A program made the translations under genes and the position numbers. 64,000 nucleotides of DNA from Utricularia gibba (lineage: Eukaryota; Plantae; Magnoliophyta), in the NCBI GenBank assembly GCA_002189035.1, contig NEEC01000023.1:868001-932000 (forward strand), in the 5' to 3' direction. Below, piece after piece: positions 1 through 62,522 of the stretch. The stretch's first letter is position 1. Each line of letters begins with the position of its first letter. The notes beneath the pieces were generated by a model, which saw only the letters and a list, made by a program, of their open reading frames with translations, had not been told where the DNA came from and searched no databases.

Positions 1-2400
1 GAGGCCATACCTTGAGTAGTCGCGTATAGAGATGGATGACCAGGAGGGTGGTGCTTTGCAGAACAAGATCATCAAAGCATGTATGCATGCATCTTCCTTA
101 TTCTATGGGCATCCGCTCACATTGACGGAGAATGAACTGTTTTTGTACATGGCTAAGAAATACATCACGTTCAAAGCATGCAAATTCTTACGTGGTGGAT
201 GGAGGAGATGCACTAGAAATGTAGTTCATGGCCAAGGTGCCTGCGAGGTACGACGAGTATCTTCGCTATCCCACGAGCGGCAGAAGACATTACAAACATC
301 GAACGAACTTGGCGCTGCTGTTTTCCCGATCATCCACGCCTACTTTTTTAGTGAAGGTCCCCGGTGCAACGTCAGGAAGAGTTCTGCCATCTCAGCAAGC
401 AAGCATGCACCATTTCTGATCCGCATCGCCCTGCTTCGGTCACATGGAGGCAACGAGATTACCGATTTTCCCGCAGTCCTCTCAAGCAGTCTAGCTGCAT
501 ATTCCCTAAACCCTACGAAACATCAATCCTCCCAAGGATGTTGCGCAGTGCACAACATAGTGGAGAGTTTAAGGATCCAGGCGGAATCGAACCGCCATCC
601 TCTCGACGCATTAATGCGACGGAGTGCTCTTCCAATACGAGCTCATGAATCCATCCCTTCGTGGTTCTAGAGTTACCCCATCACCCAACAAAGAAACAGA
701 GCTTCAAACTCAGAAAACAAAATCAACGAGGGATTACGCTTACTGATAAATGGGATAACGTTATAAGAAGTACTTTTACTTGAGGACCATCTAGTGAAGA
801 CTGGGTAAACCCCCACGTGCCACACCGGTGGGTAGACAACATTAGCCGCAACCAAGGCTACCCAAACCTGCTGCATTGGAATAAAATCGAAAAAACACAT
901 CCAGAGCAGTGAACTACCATGGCAACGACTCGAGGCAGCCTTGATCCCTCCAAAGCAGGATCAAATACCACTTACATGCAACGATATGGCGATTGGATTA
1001 AATAACTAGGGTAACAAAATTAAATGCAACAAAACCCAATCAACCTGCACATGTTCGCGCATCCGAGCGTCCAGCAACCCCGGGCAGGCCTCGTGTTAGC
1101 GCGCCGAGCGACCACCACGGAACTCCACGCCGGCAAAACAGACCTCCGAATATATACACGCTTCACGCCTCCATCGGTGCCTCTGGACGCCAACCCTGTT
1201 CCGCAGCCAGCAACCAACCACTAACGACGACAGGGATACTAATACAACCCAACAATGGCAGGAAGGCTTACAATACCCACAACCCTAAACGATGAGGGCC
1301 AAGGAAAATGAAAAGGAACAGCGCATGCGCAACCATGAAGCAACATAATGATGAATAGAAGGAAGAATGTTACGCCGATGTTAAGTCGGGCGATTTCGAG
1401 ATGTTTGATTCGCGCTGCTTTAAGATACAAATTACAAGGGAATCGCAAGTTTAAATACGCAGTACCTTTACTGATGATGCTCCCGACCGGTTGAGATAGA
1501 TTTGTTGATGACTGTTTGAATGGACCTGGATGGATTGTGCAGTCCCTACTTTATTATGTAGGACTTGGCACAGCCCATCCAGGAGCAAACAAATCGATTG
1601 CAGTGAGTTTTCCGTGCGCGGGAAGGTGCAGGATAACGCGACACACGACACAATCGAGGGGAGAGCCGGGCTGAAACCCCGTGCCATCTCCCCACCAAAT
1701 CCAAAAAACAGTTATTTTATTAGACTTTGACCTGCCATGCGAGCGCACCCAACATGGCAAAGGTCTCTGACATCCTCACCACCCACCCGTAAAGACAAGC
1801 AACGATATTCTCTACGAACCCGCAGCAAAGACAACCCAACAAAATGATCAAATACACAACGAGTAATTCCTGAAAGATAACTTCCCTTAAATCCATTCTC
1901 GGTCGGAATAGAGGCGCCTCTGAAGGGACTCCTAGAGTGGCAAGTTCACTGAATCTCGAACCGGATCACCAGCAAAAGCGCTTGGCGCAAATTTAAGAAC
2001 ATCATGACCGCCGCGAATCGTCTACAAATAACATGGATATAATTGGAACCAAGACGAGCATATGCAGTAGTAACTAAAGCTTTTAGCATAATATATCCAC
2101 GTACCTAGGCAACAGGCACATACATATGAACAGATCTGCGAAATCAAGGCGGATCGGTGACGAGTGAAACCATCGGATTCATCTCACCTGTCGGCGCTTC
2201 CGAGGAGGTGGAGAGATACGGGTCAGGCCAAAAAAACCACATCCAAAACGTAGATCTACGAGATAAGTTTTTTGAGACGGGATAGAAAACGGCAGATCTG
2301 GGAAGGAAGAGTAGATCTGAAATTGAGGGGCGGCCGCCTTGTTTTTTTTTTTGGGTTGAGATTGTCAAGGTTTGCGGAGAGAAGAGAGCCTTTTAAGCAC
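1..2400 (-). ncRNA. Putative spliced long non-coding RNA locus, CR20/GUT15-like; runs off the left edge of the window
   Basis: No recognisable CDS in any frame. Minus-strand splice signals: donor CAG|GTGAG at 2187, donor AAG|GTACT at 1465, acceptor CGCAG| at 241, donor C|GTAAG at 191, donor AAG|GTATG at 10. Strong hairpins at 1729-1765 and 1525-1583; tRNA-like fold at 572-652. GGCCCA-type promoter motifs near 2560-2610. The family assignment is recalled, not searched; the 5' boundary is approximate. Confidence 0.5.
572..652 (-). ncRNA. tRNA-like structure (cloverleaf with extended, non-canonical anticodon arm)
   Basis: Minus strand reads GGATTCA TGA GCTC GTATTGGAA GAGC A CTCCGTCGCATTAATGCGTCGAG AGGAT GGCGG TTCGATT CCGCC TGGATCC T. 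It gives a 7-bp acceptor stem (one G-U), a 4-bp D stem with GG in the loop, a perfect 5-bp T stem with TTCGATT loop (B box), and a ~9-bp hairpin in place of the 5-bp/7-nt anticodon arm. Confidence 0.75.
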
Positions 2401-2671
2401 CGGGTGAGAAAAGTGGGCCAAGTCGGCGTATCCAACGATGATGAAGGTTTGCGGATTCGTTACGCAGGATGATCGACGGTTGTTATGAGCCGGCAATAGA
2501 TTCTAGAAGCTCCTATCCGATCCCCGCCAGATTTCGGCTTCTTAGAGGGGAGGAGACCCGGCCCAGAAACCGGAGCCTGATTAACAAGCAGGTTCTTGAG
2601 GCCCAACTAAATGAATGAAAACGTGTGTATGTAAGCGCATATTAGAATGCACCAAGACCGGTGGAGAGGAT

Positions 2672-3190
2672 TGTTAGAATATACAATACTACATCGGAAA
2701 ATGAAAGTGAAATAATCTAATATATAATAAACTACATATCACAAATAATCAGTTGGGCCTAATTTTTTCTAATGCGATTTATGTTTCTTGTGTATTTGGA
2801 CTTCACGTGTATACTCACCCAACCCATCGGATCCTAAATTTCAAAATGGTATCAGAGCGTTTGACTCACGGCACGGCTTGGATGACCAAGATGAGTTTCA
2901 TTCTGATATGAGGTCCGATTAAAAAAAAAAAGGAGATTCATTATATTTAGGCGACAAAAAAATAGATTGACTTATGACCTAAATACTACCTACAATCATT
3001 AAAAAAAAAAGAGGAGCAAGTCATCATCGGATCACAGACCAGTTCGACTTGAGGGCGGGTGCTAAAATACATAATCCCACGTCGAAAAATGAAAATGGAA
3101 TAGTCAAATATATAAAAAAACTATACATCAATAGTAATAAATTGAGCCTAATCTTTTCTAATGTTATCTAGGTTAATTATCACTTGAAGT
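2672..3190 (+). mobile_element. Degenerate TRIM (terminal-repeat retrotransposon in miniature)
   Basis: 5' LTR TGTTAG...TTTCA 2672-2843; tRNA-Met PBS TGGTATCAGAGC 2847-2858; ~200-bp non-coding interior; polypurine tract GAGGGCGGG 3051-3059. The second LTR starts TGCTAA at 3060, aligns by eye with the first over ~120 bp and is 3'-truncated. Confidence 0.8.
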
Positions 3191-5628: not shown

Positions 5629-8031
5629 ATGCATAGACAAGGAGAGTGGATCATGAAGGACCCGGGGTTAGATTTGGAGCCACAGGGTTTGGGCGGACAT
5701 CCGGCGGCTTACGAAGGGATGCTGCCGGAGTTTGTATGGCAAAAGGAGGCGGGGGAGGGTCCAAGTACGGCGGATGAGAGTCAGATCCAGCAAAGCTTCC
5801 GTTGGCCGCAAAAACACCACACGCCTGTTGGAGTAAATGGCGTTCCTGAGGAGGTACTTTGCAGTTTCATGCAGCTCAGTGGATCTCTTAATTGATTCAT
5901 TGATAGATTCCTCTTCTTTTTCCCTTGTTTCTTTAATCCCCCCCCCCCCCTCCTCTTGTTTGTTGACAGCTTCGTTATATGAATCAGCATCAGCATCAGC
6001 ATCATCATCATCATCCTCAGATGAAAGATTCTTCATCCTACCTCCACCATCTGATTCAGAACCCAGCAGACCCTCAATTTCAAGGCGGCCATCATCTGAT
6101 TGGCCCGTCAAACTTGGCCGCCGGTCCATCGCAGTTCGTGTGGGCTGCTCCGGCCGACGAAGCTTCCGGCCTGAGAACTGGGAGGGTGCTGGAAGGCCAA
6201 GGCCTTTCCTTATCATTATCGTCGACGAACAAGCTGCAGAAAATGAACATGGAACAAGGTGACTTGTACTTCCGGAGTCAAGGTATTATTGGGCCATCAA
6301 ATTTCTTGAGAAACTCACGCTACTTGAGACCCGCACAAGAACTCCTTCAAGAATTCTGCTGTGTTGGGAGAGGTCAATTCAAGTACCTCAAGCTCAAAAC
6401 CAACTCAGATGACGGAAACCCTAATGCAGCAACGGCAGCGGCTACTTCTTTGCAGACGCCATCTTCCAAGGATCGCCATTCGCTCTCCCCTTCAGAAAGA
6501 ACCGAGTACCAGAGAAGAAAGATCAAGCTTCTCTCGATGCTTGATGAGGTTTTGCTCCTCTTCTCTTCTCCTATTTTTATACTTACTTCCACACATTGAA
6601 TTGGAAGGAATAATAAGGACAACAAAAATAATAATGCGAAGAGAGCTTGGGGGCCGGCCGCAAAGAGCTGCTGCTGACATGAATGTTCCCACCAAACCAT
6701 GGGCCTCAAGTCGTTCAGTTCAGCCGCAAGGGGATTGGATGATTAGTAAAAGGGTTCTTTTCTTTTCTTTTCTAGCTAATGATGATCAACTCTAGGAAAA
6801 AGGAAAACATTTGATCCTCCCCCTGTCAAGTGTCTTGTTTTGGCCGTAGCATAGCATAGGGACTTCCTTAGTCTACACATCAGAGCTACAGTGGTTTCAT
6901 TAATGCAAGCGCTGCTTTTTGGTTTGATAAGGTGGAGGAGAGGTACATGAGATACTGCGAACAGATGCAAGGGCTGGTGAACTGGTTCGACTCAGTGGTC
7001 GGCCGTGGAGCGGCGGCGCCGTACACCGCCTTAGCACAGAAGGCCATGTCACGGCACTTCCGGTGCATGAAGGATGCGATCGCGGCGGAGCTGAAATCCG
7101 CGTGTCAGCTACTTGGTGAAAAGGACGTCGCCGGCAGCAGGGGTCTCACGAAGGGCGAAACCCCACGGCTCAAAGTGCTTGAACAGAGATACCGGCAGCA
7201 GAAATCCCTGCAGCAGATGGCGGTTCTGGACCCGGAATCCTGGCGCCCCCAGCGAGGCCTGCCGGAGCGCAGCATCAACATTCTACGATCCTGGCTATTC
7301 GAACACTTCCTGCATCCGTAGGCCATTTTTGTTAATTATCATCTTCCCACCCACCCACCCACCAACCAGTTTTGAAAGCTTATGATCGATTCCAATGTAG
7401 GTACCCAAGCGAAGCTGACAAGCATCTGCTGTCGAGGCAGACGGGCTTGTCCAAGAATCAGGTAATTATTATTATGTATCCAGACAAAACAGCATATCGC
7501 ATGCATACATATTTGGCCTGCGTGATCACTCACTAATCAGAATGAGCTTGTGGGTGATTAGAAAAATAGATAATTAGTGTGTGTTCAAAGTGCATGGCAT
7601 GAATGCACTGAATGGTGAATGAGGTGAAATTCATTCGCCTACCTACCACTGAATGGCCATAAATCTCCCTGTCCCAGGTATCCAATTGGTTCATTAATGC
7701 TAGGGTTCGGCTTTGGAAGCCCATGGTGGAAGAAATGTACCAGCAGGAACTGCAGGAAGTACACCAGCAAGGAGCAGCCGCTGGGGACGCTGCTGCTGCA
7801 CGCCACCCTTCCCCGAATATCAATGCTGCAACAACAGAAAACGACCTATCGGAGGAGGGGGCTGCATCCGCCGACATCTCGCGGTGCTTCACGCCGGAGA
7901 GAATCCCCGACGCCGTACCCGCCTCCAGGAATCGCCCCGCGGGAGGAGTTTCGCTGACTCTGGAACTCAGGCACTCGGAGAATCTACCCAAGATGAGGCA
8001 CCTCTCCATAAGGGACTTTGAAGCATATTGA
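5629..8031 (+). CDS. BLH: BEL1-like TALE homeodomain protein, BLH2/BLH4 (SAWTOOTH) type
   Basis: Exons 5629-5853, 5970-6548, 6932-7317, 7401-7461, 7678-8031 with GT-AG borders. Motifs: [11 protein letters not shown] box ([21 protein letters not shown]), BELL domain, homeodomain ([11 protein letters not shown]...[15 protein letters not shown]), C-terminal VSLTL box. The start codon is inferred. Confidence 0.93.
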
Positions 8032-60033: not shown

Positions 60034-62522
60034 TCAGGACGTCATGTTCTCCCGAACCCTGTGAGCAAGCCTTTTCAAAGCTCGATCATCATAGGAATCG
60101 TCTCTTTCTTTGATTCGTGCCACAAAATCCATGGCATCTCTGTACCTTCTGAATTTACAGTATCCATCCACAACCGTGTTGTAGGTCAGCTCATTAGGTC
60201 GGCACTTGTTCTCAAACATGTAATCAATCAGTTCATCCACCTCTTGAAAGAAACCGCGCCCAGAGAAGCCGGCAATCAGTGTGTTGTACGTGACAATGCA
60301 AGGCCTTATATCTCTCCGTGTCATCTCCGTCAAAGTCCCTAGAGCCTCCTTCATTAGGCCTTGCCTGCAGAATGCTTTGATCACTGTGTTATAAGAAACG
60401 AGGTCTGGCTTCCCCCCTTCTTTAAGGAGTACATTGAGGACTTCTTGAGCCTTCCAACATTCCCCAGTTCGAGCATACATGTCCATGAGGCTGTTGTAGG
60501 TGATGAGATCAGGCTCAAGGCCACTCTCATGAATGAGAGCGAGCATTCGATGAGCTTGCTTATACATTATGTTCCTAGCATATATGGAGATCATGGAGTT
60601 GAGCAAGACCAAGTCGGGCTTGTAACCATTTTTCACAAATTCTTGGAATGCTCTCTCCATGCCTGGGAGTGATCTGCATTTAAAGTTCGCTAGAATAAGA
60701 GTTCTTGAAAGCATCCAACTTGGGAATATTTGCCCATCATAGATTTCTTTGGCGATCCTCTCAATTCCTCGAAGGTTCCCTCCTCTTGAGTAGCAGTGAA
60801 GCATCATAGAGTATGTTGTTTCATTAGGCTTGAAACCCTTGTCTCTCATGCCTTGAACAAGAACCTCGGCAGCTTTCCAGTCTCCACTGCGAGCCAGAGC
60901 GTTCAGAAGGGCATTGTATGTCGTGATGCATGCTGAAAACCCTGCTTTTACCATCTCATCATGTATCCTGCCAGCATCAATTTCTGATCCACACCTTCCA
61001 TAAGCACTTATTAGGGTATTAAAGGTGTCCCTGTCAGGCTCAAAACCGCTCTTCTTCATCTCATGGAATACACGGTTGACATACTTGTGCATCCCTTTGT
61101 TGCCGCACATAGCAAGTATCGTATTCCAAGTGACACGATTTGGAGAACAACCAGTGGATTTCATGTCAGATATTATCCCCATCATCTCTTCGACCCTTGA
61201 CTTCTTCCCCAGCATCCCGAGAATTGAGTTATACGTACAAACATTAGGAACACAACCAGACTCCTTCATGTGAGCAAACATACTCAAAGCTTTTTCCTCC
61301 CTTCCTGCTTTTCCAAAGGCATCAATCACAGTTGTGTAAGTAACTGCATTGGGCAATATACCCTTATCTGTCATAGTGCCAATCAAAGCCGCCCCTTCAT
61401 CATGGAAGCCTGCACGAACATATGCAGCAATAAGTTCATTGTAAGTCACCAAGTCGGGGAGCAATCATTTTCCTCCATTTCCTTTAAAACACTCAAGGCT
61501 TCATTGTAAGCACCAGCTTTCCCAAAGACTTGGAGCAAAGCATTATATGTTACGGTTCCAGGGACATATCCTCTTAATTTGAGCTTCCGGAAAAAACTCT
61601 TTGCTTCTTCCAACAAACCTTCTCTCCCACAAGCAGAAATCACAGTGCTGCACGTGAACTCGTCAAAATCTAGCCCTAAACTTGTCATCTCATCGAGAAG
61701 ACTTAAAATCTTATCCCAGGAGCGGCCCTTTTTGCCATAGACATCCAGCATCACATTATAAGTGACCAATGTTGGAGATAAACCTCTATTTTTAATGAAG
61801 TCAAAAAATGTGATGGCCCTGTCATACTTACCGCTTCGTGAATAGGCATGCAATATTATGGTCCAAGCTCGAATATCCATTGTGAAATCCTCAAAGTGAA
61901 TCACATCAAACAATGTAGAAGTAATTGAATGTTGAGATTCCCTACCAAGGATCTTGACCATTAACTCAATCATCTGGTTTTCCAATTTATCACTATCCGA
62001 ATTCAGAACGACCCATTCAAACAGCAAAATTGCTTTTTCAGTGTTACCAAAGAAGTCCAAGGCTTTCAAGAGACTATATTGATCTACTTCTTCAAGGAGC
62101 TCAACCTTCATAGAGTTGAAAAAGGACTGCAAGCTGGAAACTGGGCACTCCAGAATCAAATTAATGATGCACTTACAGTTTTCCGGAAGAAAATCAAGCA
62201 ACCATTCATCATTCCGTAGACCGGTTATTGAAGTGCCGCCTTCTTTCCTGAAATGGGAAGAGAAAGAGCCTCGGCTATCTGATGGCATAACGCGGGGAGA
62301 GGGAAGATAGGAATTCAGTGGCGAGGAAATATGGAGGTGCTGAAGGAGGGAATCAAGGGGAAACGAGTGGGAGGACGAGGAAGATTGCTGTTGCGGATGC
62401 TGTTGGGGAAGCAAATGGGGCAGAGACAGAGTAGAAGAGTTGAATTTCAAGTTCGGACTCGAAATTGGCTTCGTGGGTTGGAGGGGAAGTGCAGGTTTGT
62501 TGGCAAAAAAAGTCCCTTCCAT
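60034..62522 (-). CDS. PPR10: Chloroplast P-type PPR protein, PPR10 (At2g18940) ortholog, one apparent frameshift at G4 61456-61459
   Basis: N-terminal SFPLDSLLQHL, LGRESQHSITSTLFD and tandem PPR motifs split over two ORFs. Adding one base gives EMEENDCSPDLVTYNELIAAY. Confidence 0.88.

Follow-up and report, generated by a model that had tools for sequence, protein, structure and literature searches.

GUT15/CR20 is one of the oldest known families of plant long non-coding RNAs (lncRNAs). According to a 2023 review, it is conserved across angiosperms (PMC10226578). Work published by Plewka et al. describes a tRNA-like RNA in the final intron of Arabidopsis GUT15 (At2g18440, hereafter AtGUT15), with standard acceptor, D and T arms and a well-conserved T loop, a junction of three unpaired bases from acceptor to D stem, two additional nucleotides in the A box, no anticodon arm of 5 bp and 7 nt, and a CCA that is added and not encoded (Plewka et al., 2018, PMC6152437). 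The same paper assigns to CR20-1 a tRNA-like copy that is 12 nt shorter, lies in exon 2 and gave no detectable stable RNA in Arabidopsis. Here we analyzed a window of 64,000 nucleotides of Utricularia gibba (contig NEEC01000023.1, positions 868,001 to 932,000 of the forward strand), in which an initial annotation had noticed a tRNA-like cloverleaf at 572-652 on the minus strand. We consider it likely that this element is the counterpart of the AtGUT15/CR20-1 tRNA-like RNA, carried by a GUT15/CR20-family lncRNA gene of a Lamiales plant. In the literature that we searched, including by a search for GUT15 papers since 2018, the tRNA-like part is described only in Arabidopsis.

According to RNAfold, the cloverleaf is both the minimum free energy (MFE) and the centroid structure of the 572-652 minus strand (-33 kcal/mol, z = -2.7); when the segment was shuffled 200 times, 2 of the shuffled sequences were equally stable. 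The 5' part of the minus-strand RNA reads GGAUUCA UGA GCUC GUAUUGGAA GAGC A, the hairpin of the anticodon domain CUCCGUCGCA UUAA UGCGUCGAGAG, then GAU, and the 3' part GGCGG UUCGAUU CCGCC UGGAUCC U, with no CCA encoded at the 3' end. This MFE structure matches exactly the 7-bp acceptor stem, 4-bp D stem, perfect T arm and discriminator base that the initial annotation had drawn by eye. The degenerate A box, the 3 nt before the D stem and the absence of an encoded CCA were all seen as well, the A box being disrupted by two extra nucleotides. The anticodon domain has no canonical 5-bp stem with a 7-nt loop; the TTAA-capped hairpin of about 9 bp proposed in its place is made of nine Watson-Crick pairs, one U-U mismatch and one bulged A, and is capped by UUAA. 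An exact match to the 17-nt T arm occurs once in the window, against 0 expected by chance.

Every sequence-level trait listed for the Arabidopsis RNA (PMC6152437) is present in the window element. The window and AtGUT15 elements are both 81 nt long and align without a gap, every segment being equal in length, and 52 of the 81 positions are identical. Identity reaches about 90% in the D and T arms and 3 of 7 positions in each acceptor strand. Neither the acceptor sequence nor the discriminator is conserved, but the acceptor pairing is kept. The junction between acceptor and D stem is UGA in the window and UAA in both Arabidopsis copies, with equal spacing. In the 100-nt flanks, similarity to AtGUT15 is at the level of unrelated sequence.

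To assess covariation, we used an alignment of three sequences, the window element, AtGUT15 and AtCR20-1, the latter two being paralogues from one species. In the acceptor, D and T stems and the basal stem of the anticodon domain, which together comprise 19 pairs, 98.2% of the cells are paired. Four pairs, of which three belong to the acceptor stem and one to the T stem, are changed on both sides and still paired; a lack of such compensatory conservation in relatives, together with the lack of a discrete small RNA, had been named by the initial annotation as a point that would speak against it. When the 3' partners were slid by 1-3 columns as a control, pairing was 26-54% with 0 compensatory pairs. 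We regard covariation from three sequences as supporting evidence and not as a formal test. A covariance model built from the same sequences gave 97 bits at 572-652, the next match in the window scoring 13.9 bits.

The second part of the comparison lies upstream in the transcript, where window 1765-1640 matches the AtGUT15 and AtCR20-1 loci (blastn, E 1e-12 to 1e-15). The consensus fold of this core comprises two hairpins with 30 pairs, and no Rfam family covers 1640-1765. When the core was compared with Arabidopsis in translation, no frame or strand did better than another, a pattern that suggests that the RNA itself is conserved. Hairpin 1 and the element begin 1113 nt apart in the window, against 1144 nt for AtGUT15 and 1177 nt for AtCR20-1. 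The core match and the preserved spacing make the locus a member of the GUT15/CR20 family, in which both conserved parts keep their order, strand and spacing. Together, the gapless 81-nt alignment, the compensatory pairs and the conserved core at similar spacing on the same strand indicate that the element is a homologue, not a mere analogue, of the AtGUT15/CR20-1 tRNA-like RNA. The initial annotation had proposed a likeness to the GUT15 sequence, to be checked by alignment and covariance, and the relationship turns out stronger than it had suggested.

The Arabidopsis sequences were identified by scanning public metagenome contigs with a pattern common to the window element and to three oligonucleotides taken from PMC6152437, namely primer D02, probe C02 for northern blots and a stem-loop reverse transcription (RT) primer, the last by its 3' end. 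The scan returned 51 loci, mostly ordinary, chiefly bacterial, tRNAs, together with two plant groups. In the first group (L008, L013, L016, L027 and L036), all loci contain exact D02 and the complement of C02 and end in ...TTCTG, in accordance with the RT primer. In L027, the longest contig of the group, the element adjoins a succinate-dehydrogenase-type FAD-binding open reading frame (ORF) that we take to be the succinate dehydrogenase gene neighbouring GUT15 in Arabidopsis. From these sequence matches and this neighbour, we identify the first group as AtGUT15. The second group (L001, L009, L015, L020 and L025) carries the copy that is 12 nt shorter. Among the other loci, three tRNA-shaped sequences have an odd anticodon region, with 57-62-nt inserts within the matched span at L006:1567-1628 (minus) and L031:3842-3898 (minus), and with a 5-nt loop on a CUCGU/ACGAG stem at L050:6287-6325 (minus). 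These three loci are GC-rich and the plant core hairpins are absent from them. Dense arrays of tRNA-like matches to model R1 in L004, L023, L026, L035 and L043 resemble the clusters of tRNA genes of phages or bacteria.

The lineage was read from an intronless RRM protein gene in the window, whose best named relatives (Sesamum, Handroanthus, Rehmannia, Penstemon, Buddleja and Salvia, 55-65% identity) are followed by other asterids, then by rosids and monocots. This ranking places the genome in a fast-evolving member of Lamiales. The angiosperm-wide range of CR20/GUT15 (PMC10226578) makes the host family expected in Lamiales, so that the novelty which the initial annotation had seen in a possibly undescribed lineage is small. 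The element is conserved but of an already known kind, and no new category is needed. What is added is evidence that rosids and asterids share the tRNA-like module, with compensatory changes in its stems and with its spacing from the core kept. The same 81-nt geometry, compensatory changes and core distance in a Lamiales plant show that the tRNA-like part is under selection as a structure, in which the elbow and the stems count and the anticodon domain can vary freely. This conserved geometry narrows the possible mechanisms and provides a basis for a covariance model with which the module can be traced across plants.

For the host transcript, RNA contigs from two runs of the same species and from runs of two relatives were aligned to positions 1-3000 of the window. 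The relatives' runs were taken as RNA on account of their spliced contigs, and all of these data are assembled contigs. The X17 contigs carry a 95-nt variant of the only intron seen. In X9, loose ends of 22-23 T on the plus strand stand before 972 and before 842 where the genome is not A-rich, hence the poly(A) tails at these two sites are non-templated. The spliced RNA to the distal poly(A) site measures 1442 nt and its longest ATG ORF is 78 aa. The host is a spliced, polyadenylated, mRNA-like transcript without a long ORF, in line with the earlier view of a locus devoid of coding sequence. Combined with the homology, this also bears out the proposal of a non-decoding tRNA mimic hosted by an lncRNA of RNA polymerase II (Pol II) type.

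The distal poly(A) site at 842 precedes the element by 190 nt. Depth in X9 is zero across 501-800, and the relatives' contigs stop at about 1008-1052, short of the element. From another study, X2 provides a single 2339-nt contig, spliced 2021/2105, which runs through the element to position 1 and contains 196 nt beyond. The main RNAs end upstream of the element, and the element is carried by read-through RNA. The initial annotation had placed the element in an intron between a donor at 1465 and an acceptor at 241. The GT at 1465-1464 and the AG at 242-241 do exist as motifs, but the only junction seen removes 2104-2022 and the poly(A) ends at about 972 and 842 fall within the proposed intron, upstream of the element. 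A 1465-to-241 junction was not found in the contigs of the four runs, which can miss rare isoforms, and the intronic placement is unsupported by the RNA contigs. Because the CR20-1 copy is exonic, a position in the final intron is not a strict criterion of the family, and the position found here shows that an intronic location is not essential for the tRNA-like module.

Several further observations were made on the same contigs. Low-depth RNA contigs downstream of the element cover 1-95/129 (off the window start) and 295-451. In X9, nothing was present between 96 and 294, and these contigs do not fit an acceptor at 241; they could correspond to the end of another gene, a downstream cleavage product or a minor exon. 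RNA contigs from a 2024 study have a 27-nt deletion at 1125 (1125-1151) and several substitutions relative to the window, which suggests accession-level polymorphism in the terminal exon of the lncRNA. One relative (organism C) is about 95% identical across the transcript.

Table 1. Features of the GUT15/CR20-type locus in the window (positions in the 64,000-nt stretch)
Feature	Position	Strand	Basis or remark
Exon 1	2105..2366	-	RNA contigs X9, X2, X13 end ~2363-2366 (likely 5' end)
Only intron seen, 83 nt, GT..AG	2022..2104	-	junction 2021/2105 in X2, X9, X13
Terminal exon of polyadenylated isoforms	842..2021	-	poly(A) ends ~972 and ~842
GUT15/CR20 core	1640..1765	-	blastn, alignment, consensus fold
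Core hairpin 1, 38 nt, nearly invariant	1765-1728	-	GACCUUUGCCAUG...CAUGGCAGGUCA
Core hairpin 2, G/C-rich	1693-1658	-	A-rich linker before, GT-rich tail after
Read-through region carrying the element	1..841	-	X2 contig
tRNA-like element, GUT15-type, 81 nt	572..652	-	MFE fold, gapless AtGUT15 alignment, covariance model
Acceptor stem, 7 bp including one G-U	652-646 / 579-573	-	
Acceptor/D junction, 3 nt (UGA)	645-643	-	
D arm, 4-bp stem and 9-nt loop with GG	642-626	-	
Hairpin replacing the anticodon arm, 25 nt	624-600	-	UUAA loop 614-611
T arm, GGCGG-UUCGAUU-CCGCC	596-580	-	
Discriminator base U	572	-	

Some points weigh against the counterpart reading. The covariation rests on three sequences, two of which are paralogues of one species, and the interior of the anticodon-domain hairpin has no sequence conservation. 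The position of the element is unlike that in AtGUT15 (final intron) or in CR20-1 (exon 2). The read-through was seen as one assembled contig per run in one study, and a misjoin of RNA and contaminating DNA by the assembler could in principle account for it. Finally, the release, CCA addition and stability of a small RNA in U. gibba would follow by analogy with Arabidopsis.

RNase P and tRNase Z act on the elbow of acceptor and T arm. Taking the Arabidopsis case together with general tRNA biology, we infer that the element may be processed by these two enzymes and receive a CCA. Transcription proceeds from about 2366 on the minus strand, with one splice and, mostly, polyadenylation at about 972 or 842, and some transcripts extend past these sites and include the cloverleaf. 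The 12-bp stack of acceptor and T stems (7+5) and an elbow made of the D-loop GG and the T-loop UUCGA could then be recognized by PRORP and tRNase Z, with a predicted PRORP cut at 652/653 and a tRNase Z cut after the discriminator at 572. Addition of CCA would yield a stable RNA of about 84 nt, which would be non-decoding for want of an anticodon loop. In addition, the folded element or its cleavage plausibly affects 3'-end formation, splicing or termination of the host in cis.

The alternative that survives best is that the element acts purely in cis, its fold or its cleavage by RNase P and tRNase Z ending or destabilizing the read-through Pol II RNA or modulating splicing, with the small RNA as a by-product. 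Its place past both poly(A) sites, where only read-through RNA reaches it, would suit such a function, as would the variation of the acceptor sequence and discriminator under conserved pairing and the report that the Arabidopsis element inhibits splicing of its host intron (PMC6152437). However, conservation extends to the D-loop GG and to the T loop, a point relevant for an RNA folded into an L shape, and the Arabidopsis RNA accumulates stably with CCA (PMC6152437). We hold an exclusively cis-acting element to be possible but rather unlikely, the present evidence being compatible with cis and trans roles alike. A broader and more doubtful idea is that the core double hairpin and the tRNA-like element have formed one ancient two-part module, its order, strand and spacing of about 1.1 kb unchanged since the rosid-asterid split, in which the tRNA-like part would serve as a second, RNase P/Z-dependent device for 3'-end formation or termination of transcripts that escape polyadenylation. 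If this were true, the two-part module would parallel, in plants, the arrangement of MALAT1 and mascRNA, and the CCA-tailed RNA, once released, might also act in trans.

tRNA-like motifs have been proposed as mobility signals in plant mRNAs, and the fold could in the same way direct movement of the host RNA from cell to cell or via the phloem. The main polyadenylated isoforms stop short of the element and so lack it, and we judge this role improbable.

A different kind of explanation is that the element is a tRNA gene or pseudogene, for instance tRNA-Cys, with an insert at the intron site and transcribed alone by RNA polymerase III (Pol III). In its favour are a perfect B box (GGTTCGATTCC), a GCA triplet in the hairpin and the forced tRNA call that ARAGORN makes on the element once its threshold is relaxed. 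However, ARAGORN found 0 tRNAs in the window and, with introns allowed at default stringency, made no call on the element, and Rfam at gathering thresholds gave no match to the element, in agreement with the earlier statement that it has no usable anticodon loop; a permissive Rfam scan returned only sub-threshold T-arm matches to tmRNA models. The forced anticodons also differ between the homologues, being Met CAT in the window, where half of the hairpin is pushed into the variable arm, and Lys CTT in AtGUT15, and the GCA is surrounded by neither U33 nor a purine at 37. On these discordant anticodons and the missing U33/purine-37 context, a tRNA-Cys with an insert was rejected. The A box has its two extra bases, and no TTTT is present anywhere in the 571 nt downstream. 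The missing TTTT and the disrupted A box fit the Arabidopsis element, which, according to PMC6152437, is not transcribed autonomously by Pol III. An autonomous tRNA gene is thus very improbable. On the antisense strand, 571-652 (plus) has a Plastid-ycf2 5'UTR match in Rfam of 22 bits where 65.7 are needed, most likely a side effect of the tRNA-like helices.

Least credible of all is a tRNA-derived short interspersed element (SINE) or dispersed repeat that landed near the lncRNA by chance, which the relation to tRNA and the intact B box would allow. Many dispersed copies with poly(A) tails or target-site duplications were the mark that the initial annotation had named for such an origin. The 64-kb window holds a single copy (97 bits against 13.9 for the next match) with no poly(A) tail or A-rich 3' end behind it, and in the window as in both Arabidopsis genes, across plant orders, the element is linked to the core in the same order, on the same strand and about 1.1 kb away; on these grounds the repeat reading was rejected.

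Around the core, two ATG ORFs were noted on the minus strand, one of 58 aa at 1720-1896 that ends inside hairpin 1 and one of 78 aa at about 1450-1687. ORFs of 75-78 aa were once proposed for GUT15, and the sizes of the 58- and 78-aa ORFs resemble them. As a protein query for homologous transcripts, the 58-aa ORF found no candidates in the protein collection. A paralogous transcript of the same species (contigs X2, X9 and X17) matches the window only at 1656-1765, a span of 110 nt with 11 differences and 2 gaps, and it exceeds the transcript of the window several-fold in contig word depth (562 against 80 in X2).

A BEL1-like homeodomain gene at 5979-7321 (plus) is divergent from the lncRNA, its POX domain extending over two ORFs that are presumably two exons. 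Lamiales loci found via this neighbour in Handroanthus, Castilleja and Sesamum contained neither the core nor the element in all three, and they are probably other BLH paralogues. The Arabidopsis neighbours differ, with the FAD-binding ORF at GUT15 and a TFIIB-like gene and a sugar transporter at CR20-1. Farther along the window, 60034-62522 (minus) holds two adjoining, slightly overlapping PPR-rich ORFs (358 and 476 aa) that have the appearance of a single long PPR gene, broken by a frameshift or by an error in the sequence.

Among known systems, canonical nuclear tRNA genes nested in plant introns share the acceptor, D and T arms and the B box with the element. They differ in that the element lacks an anticodon loop and a terminator, has extra A-box bases and a 3-nt junction, and is not called by ARAGORN or Rfam. 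In vertebrate MALAT1, the mature 3' end arises by RNase P cleavage beside a triple helix. The mascRNA and menRNA of vertebrate MALAT1 and NEAT1 likewise are non-decoding tRNA-like folds in a Pol II lncRNA, and they are cut by RNase P and RNase Z before CCA is added (PMC6152437). The window element has no sequence relationship with them and no Rfam match, and ordinary poly(A) ends lie 190-320 nt upstream of it, unlike in MALAT1. Membership in the mascRNA family was rejected on the lack of an Rfam match and on the position of the element 190 nt past the distal poly(A) site.

The closest system is AtGUT15 (Plewka et al., 2018, PMC6152437), where a CCA-tailed stable RNA is documented, whereas the window element is known here from sequence and assembled contigs. 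The AtGUT15 element lies in a documented final intron and that of the window past the main poly(A) sites. In the window, the anticodon domain forms a tight hairpin of 10 positions capped by a UUAA loop, in contrast to a looser, interrupted stem with a small loop in AtGUT15. Five of the seven acceptor pairs differ, three of them on both sides and one by a change from C-G to U-G, and the U-U mismatch of the AtGUT15 acceptor is a U-A pair in the window; the discriminator is U in the window and G in AtGUT15. The AtCR20-1 copy shares the family, the order and spacing relative to the core and the D and T arms, but it is 69 nt long, 12 nt of the anticodon domain being missing, whereas the window element has the full 81-nt geometry of GUT15. 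With AtGUT15 itself, it shares the length of 81 nt, the segment lengths and the canonical T arm, the 3-nt junction and two extra A-box bases, the lack of an anticodon stem-loop, of an encoded CCA and of a Pol III terminator, and a place on the same strand of a non-coding transcript, about 1.1 kb downstream of the core hairpins.

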